A DNA stretch of 63,489 bases, the filler included, from Reticulomyxa filosa (Eukaryota > Protista > Foraminifera): the NCBI GenBank assembly GCA_000512085.1. It is 20 parts of 20 records of this genome, joined end to end, with 100 filler letters (N's around TTAATTAATTAA, not from the genome) between each part and the next. Parts side by side here need not be neighbours in the genome. Positions count along the whole stretch, not along the records: positions 1 to 12,657 come from ASPP01018754.1; 19 more parts are not named here. One strand, given 5' to 3'. Numbering within the stretch: position 1 is the stretch's first letter; each line of letters begins with the position of its first letter. The notes under the pieces were generated by a model, which was not told the origin of the DNA, did no database searches, and worked only from the letters and a program-made list of their open reading frames with translations. Shown in pieces: positions 1 to 11,408 of the stretch. Both the position numbers and the translations under genes were made by a program.

Positions 1-2957
1 AGGTAATGTTTGAGGAATTATTTGGAATCTGTGGAAGTAGTAAGCATATATACAAATTGGCAACAGATGCGGTTGGTTTTCCTGCTAATGGTTTTTTTTT
101 TCCCCTAACTATTGTAATCAAATTTCTTTTAGCCAGTTTGCTTTGTGCTTTTTTTATTAATTTTGTCTCTTTCACATTGTTTCTTTTTGTGAATATCTGT
201 ATCTTTTTTTTAAAAGAAAATATTAAGAGTGTGATCTAATCATTGAGTATATTGTTCGCTCAATACATTTTTTAAATCTTGAACTTGGTCCTGTTAACAT
301 TATACGTCAGCAAAATCTGTTCTTTTTGTTTGTTGTGTAAACTATTACTATCAAAAAACACTTGAACATCATGTAAACCACCAAATTCACAAAATCGAAA
401 GAATTCTAAAAATGCTTGCAAATTCTGAATAAAAATAAATACCAATCAGCATATATAATTTTATATGAAAAAATTTTTTGTGGACAAAAGGGCTTTGGAA
501 GGGGCTAGTTCCATTTTTTTTATTTTTTTTTCTGTAATGTATTTAGTTTTTTAGAAATCCGAAAGAATCTAAGTTGAATTGTTACAGATAATGAAGTAAC
601 TTGATTGTTATGACTTCTTTTACGTAGTGAAGTTTTGTTTTCTGTTTTAAAATAATTATCAAACAAATAAAGTCAAAACAAATTTCAATAATGTTTGCAA
701 ATATATACTTAAAACAAGTAAATGCACTCAATAAGCGTTAAAAAACAAATAGACCAACTTTTACAATACAAAAGCTAAACCAAACAATAATCAAAAGGAC
801 AATAATCAGAATATCTTTCGTGCATTTGATCATATGGACACAATTAGCTCTTCAAAACGTCATATATTTGCAAGAATGTACAAAATTTACAACAGCATAA
901 CGAAAAGGGATTATTGAAGAAAAGTTGTTTATGAGTGTTCAACTGTTTAATTATCGGGCCAAAAAGAGAAAAATTGCCACACTGTCATCGTTTTTTGTAA
1001 AGTAATCTTCACCATTTTCTTTTTTTCCCAAAGATGGCCACGCAAACTGCTTTTCTTTTCCTAAACAAGCCAAGGTTTTTCTACAAACTCTGTGTTAAAA
1101 CAGTCCGCTTAATAGTGCCTGGAATTCTTTGTAAAGACTATAAATACAGGAAAAAAATACAATAAAATCGATATTTTCATTGTTTTAATCAGGAAATGGA
1201 TTTTGTTGACAGTGCAGCCAAAAAAGGTCTAGTTCCATTTTATTTTATTTTTTATTTGTCATTATCGTAGTTGGTTTGCAATTTCGATCAGTTTGTATCT
1301 GATACTTAACCTTTCGGATATTGATGGAATTTCCTGTACCAAAATAGTGTGAATACAGTTATAGTGTTGTTAAAACAAACTTGTTCGTTGATATTTTTTA
1401 TTTTCATTGTATTTTATTCCATTTATATAAACAATTTAGAACAATTTGCAAGTGCCAAACCAAGTGACTATAAATGGAAAATTTAAATCAATGAAGATTA
1501 CAATCTGTTTTATCTACATTGATAATAAGTTAAAATGTTCAATGAGTGCAGTATCATTGTTCAAAAAATTTTTTTAATGCGTATTGCCAAAAAAATAGTT
1601 CATGCAGCATTTGACTATCCGATTGATAACTATATCATTTGAATTCATCAGTTCTCTTTTGATGATATTCTCTGCGAGAGGGCAAAGTGAACTTTTTTTG
1701 CGTATTGTTTTGTGCGATCGGGTATGCGTTTGAGCGAATGCCTTGAATTATAAAAAAACTATGTTGTTTAAGCAAATCGTATTATGTTAATAAAATCCGA
1801 GTAGTTTGTTAAATTCAAACCGTAGTGTTTATATGTCCGTAGAAGTCGCTTTCTTTAGCCATTTTTATGTCAGATCCAAAAAAATTTCCAACAAATAATA
1901 ATATAATTCATAAGATAATTTTCATTGTTTCCAAAATTTACGGCTAATGTCTCTCAGACCTAACGACATTGACAAAGAAAATTTTTGAATAATGGATGAA
2001 CTAGTCTCTTTGGAACTTCGAAGTTGGGGAAACAAGTTTTTTAAAAAAAGCGGCTGGTTTTTTAAATTTGTTCCTGTAATGTTTGAAGCCGTATTTTTTA
2101 TGGCGTCCCGTCAAAAGCGATAGGAGTAAACAGCCAATTCTTTTTTATGCCTCTTTAGCGGTTTTTCGCGCTTTAAGACGACTGGTATTTTTGCTCTTTT
2201 TCCAAATTTTGAGAGAAACTGTTTTTTAAGTGATGATTATTTTTTATTGACAACCTCTAAAATGAACCAAACATGGTTGTGAGATAACTCTACGATTCTG
2301 AGTTTTTAGAAATTGTTTTTTTTTTTGGCTGGGAATTGAAGAAAAGAAATTGTGTTGTTGTGATTAAAAATAGTTGAGTAGCCAATCAGACTGGAACTTG
2401 TCGAAAAATTCAAAGAGGATACCAAAGTTGGAAAATTGAAACTTTGGCCTTTGTGTGCACAATTTTTTGCGTAAAATGTTTAAAATAAAAATTTGTTATT
2501 TAAATTCAAAACTAAATTGTTATCTAAAGTTCAAATGTAAGGTTCAACAACGCATTGAAACACTTAAAAGTTATGGATGATGTAAACATTTTCAATGGCT
2601 TGCATTAAAAATTCAATATTTTGTAAGGAGAAAATATCTTCAAAAGTTTTAACTAAATCTGCTTTGTTCGCACAATTACTCTTTATCTAATGGAAATCTA
2701 AGAGATTTTGATTGTGGATATCTTGCATCTACAGCCCTATTTCTTTGAAAACATTCTCCAAAATACTATTGGACAAGTGTACTTCAGAAGTGAAAATTAG
2801 CCCTGTTCAATATGAAAAATGTAATCTAAGAGACGTCTTGGATCTACTGTAAACGTTACTGATAAGTAGTTTTAGTTTTGGAGTTTAAACTTTGAAACTG
2901 TACCCAAAAAAGGAAATATTGTGAACTGTCTAGCTACAAAGAACGTAAAGGAACCAT

Positions 2958-5546
2958 ATGAAGATTGGCGACTTTCGCAGTCCAAAATTCAAAAACGAGA
3001 GCAAATCAAGCTTAATATGGGGTCGTTTGGTGCCAACCTCACATTTGCACAAAGTGCTGGAACTGTCCTTAGACGAAGTAAAACTTGGTAGAGACAAACA
3101 AGCACATCTTAAAATCCGTGAACCACAAATTTCGAGTTTGCACTGCATTATCCGAAGAACTGCGACCAATCAACAAGCTGACAAAATCCCTTGTTGTGAA
3201 GTGATTGATTGCAGTATCAATGGAACTTATGTCAACAAAACCAAAATAGGAAAAGGACAGAAATGCAACATGTTTGATGGCGATGAGTTGATACTTCTCC
3301 AGCCATCCAAGCATCTCAAACATGGAAAGAAGCGAGGTCTATTTCTTTCTTCCAAAAAACAACAAAAAAAAGTTTATTTAATAAATGAAAACTATATGTT
3401 TTAAAATTTTTTTTTCGTATTACAGTTGAAATTTTTTTGTTTGTCAACCAATCAAAAAATTTTTGCTTGGATTGTTTGATTTGTTGGCTACAGAAAAAGT
3501 AAGCTTTTATTTTTACATGACAAAACCGCAAAAACAAGAACCCCCGCTGCTCAACCAAAAATACGAGTTGCAAGAAACATTGGGCACTGGACCAAATGCA
3601 GTTGTGAAGCTCGCGATCAATGTTTGTACTGGCGAGCGAGTGGCAATGAAGCAGATCGCGAAGAAGCAGATAGGACTGAAATCAAACACGGAAAAACTGG
3701 AAATCACAAGTATCATGAACGAATTGAAAATGTTACAAAAAACGGACCACTAAAAACATTATAAAAATTTACGATATTTTTGAGACAGCGAACATTTGGT
3801 TTGGCATTGGAATTGGCCGGTGGAAATTTGTTTCAGAGAATTGCTCATCAGAATCTTTCAGGTTGGTTTGTTTTTTCTTAAAGCATTGATTATTTAAAAA
3901 TTATTCTGCCACACACACAATGGAACAGAGGAGATTGTGCGAAAAATTATGTGGCAACTATTATCAGCCGTTAACTACCTGCATGAACTCAAAATAATTC
4001 ACGGAAATGTAAAACCTGAAAATATATTGCTTGTGAACGAAAATGCTTGGGATATCAAGGTTACTGATTTTGGTTTGTTACATGCGTTACAACTGGATCA
4101 ACAACCTGAAGTATCCGCGTGCAATGTGTCGTCATTCTTGGCACCGGAAATACTATCCAATCGAAAAATAGGTTTTTTTTCTTTCGTTTTTGTTTCTCTC
4201 TTTTTCGCTTTTTTGTTTGCAGCAAAGGCAAGGACATGGACTTGTCTTTGATGTTTTTTAACATGCATCGAAGATGAATGTGGGTTTGAAGTGGATTATT
4301 GGAGCATGGGAGTGACCATGTATTACTTGCTAACCGGACATTCACCCTATGACACGAAGGAGGGACATTTGCTTGATTTAATTAAATTGGGACGGTTTAG
4401 TTTCCCTTTACAGACGTGGCAGTTTGTTAGTATCTCTGCCAAGGACTTGGTGGAACACTTAATGAAATTAAATACACAGGAGAGATTTGGATGGAAAGAG
4501 ACTCACTCACATCCATGGATGCAGGCTATTTCCGCTTATCTTCCTCCCTTTCCCTCTTTAGAACAAAAAAAGGTAGATCTAACACCCCTTGAGCCGCCTC
4601 AAGAATTGCCTGAAGTAGAAGAAGTAATTCAATTCAAGCAAGACTCTGTGGATATTGACACACAAGAAAAGGAAAGTGTCAAGGAAAAGGATGCGAATAT
4701 CGATTTTGTCGTCACGGCAGCTGACATACAACCGGTTGAACACAACGCGTTGCCGTTGCAAAACGAAGTTTTAGAGGATGAACCAGAAGAACAAAATAAA
4801 GAAAACAGCAGCGGGGTTGTGAACATTAGCTCGCAGCCAATAGAAACTGGAGTTGTCAATGTGACATCAATTGAATTGAAATATGAAGGATTAACTAGGA
4901 AAAGAGTTTGGAATCAAAGTAACGACATAGAAATATTCGATTGTGGTAATATGGAAGACAATGCTATCGGGTCCCCTAAATCTAAAAAATCCAGACTTAG
5001 TAATAGCATCACTGTAGAAGAAGTTACGTTTTGCTTCATTGTTCTTTACGAGGGTGATTTTAATGTGTGTTGTGGGTTTACATTTATTAGCCACAAAAAT
5101 CACTTTGGATAACTCCATGGAAATCAATTGAAGGACATTCCGATATGCAGCTGGCTTTGCTACCCAATGCTAAAGAAGATAATGTGCAGACTGAATTAGA
5201 TAAAGAAGAAGTTGTGCCGAATATAACTCTCAATACAAATGAGGAAGAAATATCTCTAAATTTCAATGAGGAAGCAGTACCTCTTAAATTCAACGAAGAG
5301 GCAGTGCCTCTTAAGTTCACCGAAGAAGAGTTGCCTCTCAAATTTAGTGGAGAGGAAGTACCTTTCAAATTTAGCGGAGAAGAAGCACCATTCAAGTTTG
5401 GTGAGGAAGACGAGGGACTTAAGGTTATTGGCGAAGATACCTCTTTCAAGTTTGGTGGAGAGGTTGGACCACTTAAATTCAATGATAATTCAACACTCCT
5501 AATCAACATCGCAAATGTATTACCAGAAAATCAGCAAATTCAATGA
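2958..5546 (+). CDS. FHA-domain Ser/Thr kinase-like protein (Chk2/Rad53/Cds1-like architecture), multi-exon, probable pseudokinase with apparent frameshifts
   Basis: FHA motifs LGR..QISSLHC..DCSINGTYVN, then kinase motifs LGTGPNAVVKLA, VAMK, HGNVKPEN, VTDFG, FLAPE, VDYWSMGV and ISAKDLVEHLM. Phase-consistent GT-AG introns at 4172-4273 and 5023-5090. Two frameshifts near 3751 and 3800. Confidence 0.8.
5255..5480 (+). repeat. 27-bp coding tandem repeat (PLKFNEEAV / PFKFSGEEA-type nonapeptide) in the kinase C-terminal exon
   Basis: LNFNEEAV PLKFNEEAV PLKFTEEEL PLKFSGEEV PFKFSGEEA PFKFGEED ... SFKFGGEVG PLKFN in ORF 5145..5546. Confidence 0.85.
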
Positions 5547-8684: not shown

Positions 8685-9390
8685 AGTCAGAAGATGAGAT
8701 TCAAGCCATTGTTGAAATTGTATTTGGAAACTAAAATTTAATTAGGATAGATCTATAATTTTGACAAACTTATTATCAATTATGTTAGTTCTTTTGTTTT
8801 TGTTCATTCAGTGACTTGTTATTATTTATGTTACTATTCCATACAGGCTGCTACTGTCTTCATGCTTGAGACATTTTGTTTGTCACCTAAATTACTCAAT
8901 ATATTCACTGGTCACACAAGCATCGTGAATAGTATTGATTCAATATTTAATTGTCATTAACATATCTGTTCTGGGTCAGGTAGTATGTGAGTTAGATACT
9001 AGAAAATTCATCCAATCATTTAATAAACATGCAACAGCTGTAAATTGTGTAAAATTTTCATCACATCTTATCAAAAACGTCGTATAATTTTGTCAGCATA
9101 TTAAAAGCAAATGAAATTACAATGTTTTTGAGATATTGGACATAATCAATAATTTCAAGTATTCAATGGACACACTAATGCTGTCGTAGCATTGAGTTTT
9201 CATCATTTAATGGTGGTAGATATTTGTGTTCTGGGTCATATGACAAAACAGTTTGTTTATGTGATGTTAAAACATCTAAATCATTACATGTTTTCAATGA
9301 ACATGAAGATACTGTTTGGTGTGTTGATATTTCACCATTTCAAAGCAATACCAGCAACAGTAATAAGTGTTATTGTGATTGTTGGTAATA
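8685..9390 (+). pseudogene. Degenerate WD40-repeat gene
   Basis: Fragments EDEIQAIV, NFDKLIINY, FMLETF...KLLNIFTGHTSIVNSID, ICSGS and FNGHTNAV, broken by stops and frameshifts. Confidence 0.65.
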
Positions 9391-10162: not shown

Positions 10163-11408
10163 ATGGCAAAACGAGTGAATCGTCAATTGAAGAAACAATT
10201 AGAAGAGCAGAAAAACTTGGAAGAGGAGTTGGACAAACTTCAAAACGGAAAGGACCCAAAAGAATCATGTGCAGAAGTGATTAAATTTGTTCAAAGCACA
10301 TCAATGGACCCAATGCCAGACACTGGTAAGACTGAAGAAGATTGAGATATTTTTTGAATTGAAAAAATACCTCAAACACAAAAAAAAAACAATACCAAAA
10401 AAAAAAAGTAACTATTTTTTTAAAATTCTAATTTCATTTGTCTATTTGATTTGTGTACGTTTTTTTTTTCTTTTCTCCCTCTTTTCCCCCTTTTTTTTTA
10501 AAAGAAAAGATTATCTTATAACCATATGAGACGAAAAAACAAGAAAAAAGTTAACAAAAAAGAAAGACAGAATGTTTGTATTGATTTTTAAAACAAAACA
10601 AAAAAAAGAAAATAACCCGTTTACGGTTTGCTTCCTCGCCGGAACACAAATATTAGTGAATAAACAAGGCAAACATAAAAAAATTGAGGAATTAAGAGTT
10701 GGTGAAGTGATTCAGTGTCTTGTACCTACTCATGAATCGTTTAAAGAAAGTATTGACTGTGAAATCAAAGATATTCCAAATGTTATGACTGATGCTGTTG
10801 TGGCTGCTATCCATTCTTCAGTCTCATATTCTATTTGCAGTATCAAATATCGTAACTTGACAACAGTTTCTCAAAAATATATATTTTTTAAAAATTTATT
10901 TTATATTTTATTTCATGAATAAAAAGATAGAGAGAAAAGAAAGACAGTATAAAAGTTCTTTTTAAAAATTAAAAAAGGCGTATACGTAAAAAAAAAACTT
11001 TTAATTAAAAAAAAAAAAAATGAATAAACATTAAAACGTGTTAAAACAAAAAAAACTTTAACAATAATAACACATCTTTATATATTTGATATTTTTAATA
11101 CTAATTAGAATGAAGAACGCACAATTGAATGCACCAATGGTCATCCGATATATGTAAATAAAGAAGGATGGAAAACGGTAAGCGGCGTTTCCCATGAAAT
11201 GTATGATTTTAAAATCCAGAAACTAAAAGTTGGCGATCAAGTTTGTTTAGAAAGCGGACACCTTGCTCAAATTACCCACATTCATTCCACTTCTCTCAAA
11301 GAACCTGTCACCGTTTACAATTTGACCGCGTCTAAGGGTCACACCTTCTTTGCCAATGGTTTGTTTGTCCACAATAAAGGATTTTGTGAAGGTTGCATCA
11401 TTTTGTAA
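10163..11408 (+). CDS. G-protein gamma-like subunit with an inserted intein-like Hint domain and C-terminal CaaX box (exons 10163-10325, 10609-10865, 11109-11408; 239 aa)
   Basis: Introns 10326-10608 (GT..AG, phase 1, G|AA = Glu) and 10866-11108 (GT..AG, phase 0) join three ORF-track pieces into one open frame. Residues 1-61 are G-gamma-like (coiled coil, SCAEVIKFV, DPM, ENNPF). Residues 62-229 are the Hint domain (CFLAGTQI, IEELRVGE, IECTNGHPIYV, LKVGD, VYNL...HTFFANGLFVHN). The tail is KGFCEGCIIL-stop. Confidence 0.88.
10629..11375 (+). other. Hint (intein/BIL-like) autoprocessing domain of 168 aa, no homing endonuclease, split by a spliceosomal intron
   Basis: Cys1 codon at 10629; block B T-N-G-H at about 11133-11144; block F VYNLT; block G His-Asn at 11370-11375. 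Confidence 0.9.

Follow-up and report, generated by a model that had tools for sequence, protein, structure and literature searches.

Type A bacterial intein-like (BIL) domains carry Cys1, a TxxH motif and a C-terminal His-Asn (HN), and they lack the Cys, Ser or Thr at position +1 that standard inteins require. For these domains a ligation of the two flanks was proposed, in which the thioester is attacked by the amino group that Asn cyclisation sets free (PMC4031507, PMC7664689). The BIL2 domain of the Tetrahymena thermophila BUBL protein was reported to form an isopeptide bond with the epsilon-amine of a Lys and to be activated by Zn (PMC8616854). Here we describe a domain of this kind in a 63,489-nucleotide stretch of eukaryotic, AT-rich DNA of the foraminifer Reticulomyxa filosa (assembly GCA_000512085.1), which is called the window; all coordinates are positions along this whole stretch. 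The gene is on the plus strand and has three exons, and its product of 239 amino acid residues (aa) consists of a 61-aa N-extein, a 168-aa Hint domain and a 10-aa C-extein. By its motifs (Cys1, TxxH, HN, and no nucleophile at +1) the domain is a type-A BIL-like Hint in a new host protein, and the two flanks resemble the body of a G protein gamma subunit (G-gamma) and its CaaX tail with an extra Cys. The original prediction made for this locus had named both the type of the domain and the likeness of the flanks, and both assignments stood; its account of the ends and the ligation of type A BIL domains was also accurate (PMC4031507, PMC7664689). The chemistry of the Hint class is known, and as far as we searched, a placement in a G-gamma-like subunit right before the CaaX tail, kept throughout a protist family, was not found in the literature. 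The searches for a Hint within a G-gamma, an intein in Reticulomyxa or a Hint in foraminifera returned nothing relevant.

The domain has, in conserved form, every residue that the N-S acyl shift and the Asn cyclisation require, and a hydroxyl or thiol at the +1 residue is absent. In the processing that we propose, Cys1 would be helped by the His of TxxH to turn the peptide bond between Val(-1) and Cys1 into a thioester, and the cyclisation at His-Asn would sever the bond between Asn and Lys+1. An amine of Lys+1 would then resolve the thioester, which would reconnect the 61-residue body with the lipid-anchor tail and eliminate the Hint domain. The product would be a G-gamma of about 71 residues, open to geranylgeranylation at the Cys of the CaaL box and probably S-acylated at the neighbouring Cys. 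Judged from the sequences, a ligation of body and tail mediated by a Lys amine is the most likely outcome, and we give it a probability of about 0.56. An attack by the alpha-amine would lead to a linear product and an attack by the epsilon-amine to an isopeptide; the two carry about equal weight, and the sequence cannot discriminate between them. In the epsilon route, for which our expectation is tentative, the epsilon-amine of Lys+1 would attack the Cys1 thioester in cis and the Asn cyclisation would then free the Hint domain, leaving the tail isopeptide-linked and the alpha-amine of the Lys free. If this route is true, it would represent protein splicing of a new class, with a nitrogen nucleophile at +1, constitutive in a eukaryotic signalling protein and possibly present also in many bacterial Hint arrays with the HN-Lys junction.

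The Hint assignment was tested with profile and structure searches. The exons of the window were submitted to these searches one by one, not joined, and the intact orthologue P0153, which is 78 % identical to the window gene in exon 3 and 68 % in exon 2, was used for folding. Exon 3 matched the PT-HINT (E 4.8e-7) and Intein_splicing (E 1.2e-5) profiles, and the match to TIGR01443 intein_Cterm (25.8 bits with a cutoff of 15.6, E 8.5e-6) stopped exactly at the HN. The closest solved homologue by sequence was the Tetrahymena BUBL BIL2 (6Y75/6TMM, E 1.2e-7). The AlphaFold2 (AF2) model of P0153, computed with the family alignment as input, had a mean pLDDT of 82 and of about 90 within the Hint domain. 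When this model was compared by Foldseek, BIL2 was at rank 1 (E 2.6e-13, TM-score 0.84-0.88, 28 % identity), followed by the BIL domain of Clostridium thermocellum (2LWY, E 7.5e-11, TM-score 0.88); mini-inteins were found at lower ranks and Hedgehog domains at ranks 28 and 30.

With the C. thermocellum BIL4 domain (PDB 2LWY), a type A BIL, the R. filosa domain has in common the motifs and the fold, the size of a mini-domain (about 140-170 aa, here 168 aa without an endonuclease insert) and nearest relatives that mostly have Lys at +1. It differs in that the host gene belongs to the nuclear genome of a eukaryote and a spliceosomal intron interrupts the domain. Its host is, moreover, a small G-gamma-like signalling subunit whose C-extein, of only 5-11 residues, is a lipidation signal, and domains of the R. 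filosa type are conserved along with their host across the family under purifying selection. The Tetrahymena BIL2 (6TMM, 6Y75) is the best match in both sequence and structure and likewise a BIL of a eukaryotic protist. It is, however, flanked by ubiquitin-like domains, of which the upstream one is reportedly conjugated to lysines of other domains or proteins, whereas in R. filosa a G-gamma-like coiled-coil body precedes the domain, a CaaL tail follows it, and the Lys at +1 is itself the candidate.

Class 1 mini-inteins such as Ssp DnaB, Npu DnaB and gp41-1 share with the R. filosa domain the Hint fold and blocks A, B, F and G, and in both cases the insert is located inside a conserved short host protein that would look normal after its excision. 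The differences are in block F, in mobility and at the +1 residue. Block F of R. filosa has an Asn (VYNL) at a position where many inteins have an Asp. The gene has several paralogues with common introns and no sign of mobility, and the sporadic presence and absence that would be expected of a mobile intein was not seen, as every family member found has the Hint domain. Since the R. filosa domain is without a +1 nucleophile, the branched intermediate of block G cannot form (PMC4031507).

The structural matches bear on a different fate of the thioester, in which the body would be passed from Cys1 to a lipid, to a small molecule or to a Lys of another protein, and the CaaL box would merely target the precursor to the membrane. 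For BIL2, the closest solved homologue, it was reported that the ubiquitin-like domain on its N-terminal side becomes attached to other proteins through an isopeptide bond (PMC8616854). The Hedgehog/Hog domains, which are among the matches, also have the Hint fold as part of a eukaryotic signalling protein, and it is the N-terminal part of this protein that would become a thioester. However, only 10 residues follow the HN in R. filosa, so that the sterol-recognition region after the Hint is missing, and the protein has instead the His-Asn and a C-extein. A route of the Hedgehog type has no need of a conserved HN and Lys+1, and the N-extein is not ubiquitin-like. We therefore regard such a transfer as very improbable.

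The end of exon 3 was read as ...HTFFANGLFVHN-KGFCEGCIIL-stop, by direct reading of 11340-11408 and by translation of 11109-11408. The positions that the original prediction had given, among them that of the Lys codon, were all correct, and so were the Lys in place of Cys, Ser or Thr at +1 and the second Cys three residues ahead of the CaaX Cys. A CaaX box with Leu as the last residue predicts geranylgeranylation.

The family was gathered by an exhaustive HMMER search with exon 3 as the query and by two word-based searches. Besides three more copies in R. filosa, it includes one contig from Logan and, from environmental samples of the JGI, more than 12 different intron-less contigs, each about 1 kb long and with the whole open reading frame (ORF). 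Members of a divergent clade (P0134, P0091, P0184, P0185, P0187) are 27-36 % identical, and P0044 is separately divergent with 38 % identity. The order of HN, Lys, a Cys at +2 to +4 and a CaaL box was found in all 22 relatives that have a C-terminus, and with the window in 23 of 23. The tails, for example KGCCVIL, KCVIL, KCPCVIL, KGCPPCVIL, KFCRDGCCVIL and KCPHCVIL, have the general form C-x(0-4)-CaaL. Whether Lys+1 is conserved in orthologues had been raised as a check, and it is Lys in all of them, although a change from AAA to AGA takes one transition. The codon is AAA in the AT-rich members and AAG in a GC-rich member, and a sequencing error at this position was excluded by the conservation in 23 of 23 members with two different Lys codons. 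The Logan contig (L002, SRR8820976, coding sequence 80-799) carries a G-gamma-Hint-Lys-CaaL member whose coding sequence has 59 % GC; hence the architecture exists in an organism very unlike R. filosa in base composition.

In 20 aligned sequences (alignment A2), Cys1, CTxxHP, VYNL, FFAN, HN and the Lys were at least 90 % conserved, and no family member with an N-terminus lacked Cys1. In pairwise comparisons the Hint part gave dN/dS values of 0.11-0.32 with saturated dS, which indicates purifying selection. This, together with the conservation, the transcripts in relatives and the common introns, shows that the Hint domain is old, expressed in relatives and selected, and not a decaying insert. 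By these sequence comparisons it is a fixed and selected part of a G-gamma-like family in R. filosa and related protists, located between the NPF motif and the CaaL tail. We also considered that the Hint is a domesticated, inactive domain and the 239-residue protein functions without processing, the Hint being a beta-domain inside a G-gamma-like scaffold. In line with this, the non-catalytic domain AXH was also matched by sequence in Pfam (E 2.7e-7). A Hint derivative without activity normally no longer has its catalytic residues, whereas here those needed for the N-S acyl shift and the Asn cyclisation persist under purifying selection even in members of about 30 % identity, and an inactive domain is accordingly a very doubtful explanation.

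To see how the HN-Lys junction compares with the wider Hint subfamily, we surveyed the 150 best representatives, leaving out the G-gamma family, and read 146 recognisable junctions that end in HN. The +1 residue was Lys in 104 (71 %), Arg in 13 (9 %), Cys, Ser or Thr in 15 and Ala in 7. These closest relatives were mostly multi-Hint proteins from Bacteroidota and from a metagenome-assembled genome of Nanoarchaeota, often as tandem arrays with linkers such as HN-KGG-C. With Lys at 71 % of the junctions, the HN-Lys junction is normal for the BIL-like clade, which changes the sense of the term non-canonical that had been applied to it: the +1 nucleophile is indeed missing, but the junction is the majority state of the closest Hint subfamily and no oddity of this gene. 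The frequency of Lys and the Arg in 9 % weaken the inference that the Lys must be the nucleophile. The alternation of Lys and Arg in the relatives suggests that a positive charge may suffice for the chemistry of the domain itself.

The same survey bears on the role of the tail Cys. In principle, the Cys at +2 to +4 could accept the thioester from Cys1 in a transthioesterification that would tether the body to the tail, and after the Asn cyclisation the Lys alpha-amine would complete a long-range S-to-N acyl shift to a linear product. A Cys is present at +2, +3 or +4 in every family member, the exchange between thiol and thioester is chemically easy, and a relay of this sort would overcome the diffusion of the tail peptide that burdens the free-amine model. 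The Cys would, however, be explained equally well if it is S-acylated or is the Cys of the CaaX box. No Cys up to +6 was present in 60 of the 104 HN-Lys junctions of the relatives outside the G-gamma family, which shows that the subfamily does not require it, and a precedent for the relay was not found. We consider the relay improbable.

Two observations on Hint arrays were made along with the survey. In P0010, P0024, P0028 and similar prokaryote-type proteins, 3-4 tandem Hint domains are separated by linkers that are only K-G(1-4) or K-G-W, as in HN-KGG-CFLPGT... The protein P0014 of the foraminifer Nonionella stella (EukProt EP01083) has three Hint domains within residues ~264-730, and a ubiquitin follows directly after each of them (HN followed by SWQIFVRTLTGK, HN followed by AMQIFVKTLTGK). 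P0014 is a BUBL-like array in a foraminifer; to our knowledge, such arrays were previously described in ciliates only.

The likeness of the host protein to G-gamma was tested with the GGL profile (PF00631). Against the N-exteins of the family the best match was 17.6 bits (E 0.0038) with a gathering score of 27.1 bits, and 7 of 15 members matched; exon 1 of the window gene alone had no GGL match in the Pfam search. The alignment was collinear, with residues 10-59 on model positions 5-59 of 69. Likewise, the family profile aligned with transducin gamma-T1 in a collinear way from the first helix via DP(L/M) to NPF (E 0.19), and in the AF2 model of P0153 the body forms the helices 2-28 and 32-45. 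After excision, the distance from NPF to the prenyl Cys would be 6-9 residues. Canonical G-gammas have 5-6 residues in this stretch, commonly with a Lys, and some of them are known to be S-acylated at a Cys beside that of the CaaX box. The R. filosa protein thus shares with canonical G-gamma a length of about 71 aa after excision, the two N-terminal helices, the DP(M/L) and NPF motifs, and a basic residue and an extra Cys ahead of the CaaL box; it differs in the score below the Pfam threshold and in the 168-aa predicted self-processing domain between NPF and the tail. Overall, the profile and motif evidence makes the host protein a probable, putative G-gamma. A short body homologue that lacks the Hint did not appear in a word-based search with the N-extein alignment, which is a weak negative, and the ESM Atlas feature search with the N-extein gave no usable match. 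Metagenome contigs scanned with this alignment also had no match, a result without weight, since the metatranscriptome contigs in which the family occurs are evidently not part of that collection.

A ligation is suggested by the persistence of the tail. The dual-Cys CaaL tail occurs in every member at the spacing of a G-gamma, no copy without the Hint appeared in the word-based search and both cleavage sites are conserved, from which we infer ligation as the selected outcome. Several points weigh against it. BIL domains were reported to yield mainly cleaved products (PMC7664689, PMC4031507), and the free 10-mer that results from Asn cyclisation could diffuse off before it is ligated. Bacterial relatives with flanks unrelated to G-gamma commonly have Lys+1 as well, and given the Arg in 9 % of their junctions this Lys may have a catalytic or charge role and not that of a nucleophile. 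In addition, the G-gamma assignment is sub-threshold in Pfam (17.6 versus 27.1 bits), and the missing Hint-less copies depend on a word-limited search and on the gene calling of short ORFs.

Some of these points favour a cleavage without ligation, possibly regulated. The prenylated precursor would then be a membrane-bound G-gamma with a bulky insert, and its body would be severed from the lipid tail by thioester hydrolysis, Asn cyclisation or both. G-beta/gamma would be irreversibly freed or never anchored, and a lipidated short peptide would remain. Exon 3 matches the related PT-HINT domains, and PT-HINT domains are thought to release C-terminal modules. The dependence of the BIL2 activation on Zn (PMC8616854) shows that such Hint chemistry can be conditional, and the predominance of cleaved products among BILs (PMC7664689, PMC4031507) points in the same direction. 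On the other hand, cleavage alone leaves unexplained why the dual-Cys CaaL tail at a G-gamma-like spacing persists in 23 of 23 members. The word-based search returned no G-gamma without a Hint to act as the anchored form, and one cut would suffice for the release, yet the Cys1/TxxH and the HN sets are both conserved. Cleavage only is a rather unlikely outcome, but the strongest of the alternatives to ligation. The original prediction had also compared the released 10-mer to a lipopeptide pheromone, and nothing in our evidence supports this idea.

The usual view of intein-like domains is that they are either selfish insertions or modules for protein processing in bacteria, whereas here such a domain is fixed in a putative core subunit of eukaryotic signalling, and its site lies exactly where the protein body and the membrane anchor would be separated. 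If the domain ligates, this would be a natural protein splicing, nucleophile-free or lysine-mediated, on which the cell depends, and tools for traceless or isopeptide ligation could be modelled on this compact natural example. If it only cleaves, it would be a built-in irreversible switch that releases G-beta/gamma from the membrane.

The features of the gene are listed in Table 1. The intron-less orthologue P0153 was aligned by tblastn, and its residues 1-54, 55-139 and 140-239 correspond to exons 1, 2 and 3, with residues 1-54 on 10163-10324. The product of exon 1 is a coiled-coil with the N-terminal helices of the G-gamma type. The junction at intron 1 (DT/E-NNPF, where the slash marks the intron) agrees with the transcripts P0003 and P0153, and at the site of intron 2 the transcripts run uninterrupted (...YRNLxT-NEE...). 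Both intron positions are common to three R. filosa loci, and intron 1 has the same site in the paralogues L005 and L006. Removal of the Hint by alternative mRNA splicing was excluded, since the borders of the domain match no in-frame GT...AG pair and the foreign transcripts retain the domain in frame.

Table 1. Features of the Hint/G-gamma-like gene of R. filosa in the window
Feature	Position	Strand	Remarks
Exon 1	10163..10325	+	ATG + 54 codons + base 1 of codon 55; MAKRVNRQLKK...SMDPMPDT
Intron 1	10326..10608	+	GT...AG, phase 1; donor G/GTAAGA at 10326
Exon 2	10609..10865	+	E-NNPFTV (end of N-extein), then N-half of Hint, CFLAGTQILV...YRNLTT
N-terminal junction, Val(-1) GTT / Cys1 TGC (block A)	10626..10631	+	Cys1 codon 10629-10631
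Intron 2	10866..11108	+	GT...AG, phase 0; falls within Hint domain
Exon 3	11109..11408	+	C-half of Hint, 10-residue tail, stop
Block B, TNGH (Thr-Asn-Gly-His, TxxH)	11133..11144	+	Translation of exon 3
Blocks F and G, VYNLTASKGHTFFANGLFVHN	11313..11375	+	VYNL...FFANGLFVHN; ends with His-Asn 11370-11375
His-Asn, CAC AAT	11370..11375	+	Direct reading
+1 Lys, AAA	11376..11378	+	Lys in 23/23 family members
Tail GFCEGCIIL, GGA TTT TGT GAA GGT TGC ATC ATT TTG	11379..11405	+	Direct reading
Inner Cys, TGT	11385..11387	+	3 residues ahead of CaaX Cys TGC 11394-11396
CaaX box CIIL	11394..11405	+	Direct reading
Stop, TAA	11406..11408	+	Direct reading

The gene model corrects the public annotation. The public protein RFI_21520 (P0163) has exons 1 and 2 in common with our model but is mis-spliced; compared over 10163-10922, it reads through the introns and ends in intron 2. 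As exon 3 is absent from it, the C-half of the Hint and the CaaX tail are missing in the public protein. The paralogues, whose loci are also in the assembly GCA_000512085.1, go in the databases under the names 'YD repeat protein' or 'intein splicing region domain protein, partial'. An identical exon 1 was found on a second contig, ASPP01003225.1 (L013), which ends just past it; this suggests an allelic or redundant assembly copy.

Genes with WD40 repeats adjoin all three R. filosa G-gamma-Hint copies, at 8811-9388 (+) in the window, at 542-1456 (-) in L005 and at 2619-4728 (+) in L006. The adjacency may be due to a segmental duplication or to the mere abundance of WD40 genes in the genome. The neighbouring WD40 gene was considered as a G-beta partner and rejected, as the neighbour in L005 was WDR5-like or a generic WD40 protein by comparison with the PDB.

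Elsewhere in the window, a 27-bp tandem repeat of about 5 copies at 5238-5399, without a Pfam match, encodes a 9-residue repeat (...EEAVPLKFN...) within an ORF at 5145-5546. At 2958-5112 on the plus strand, exons of a protein kinase (PF00069) come after an FHA domain (PF00498, E 1.2e-12), and by these domain matches the region is a CHK2/Rad53-like FHA-kinase gene with short introns.

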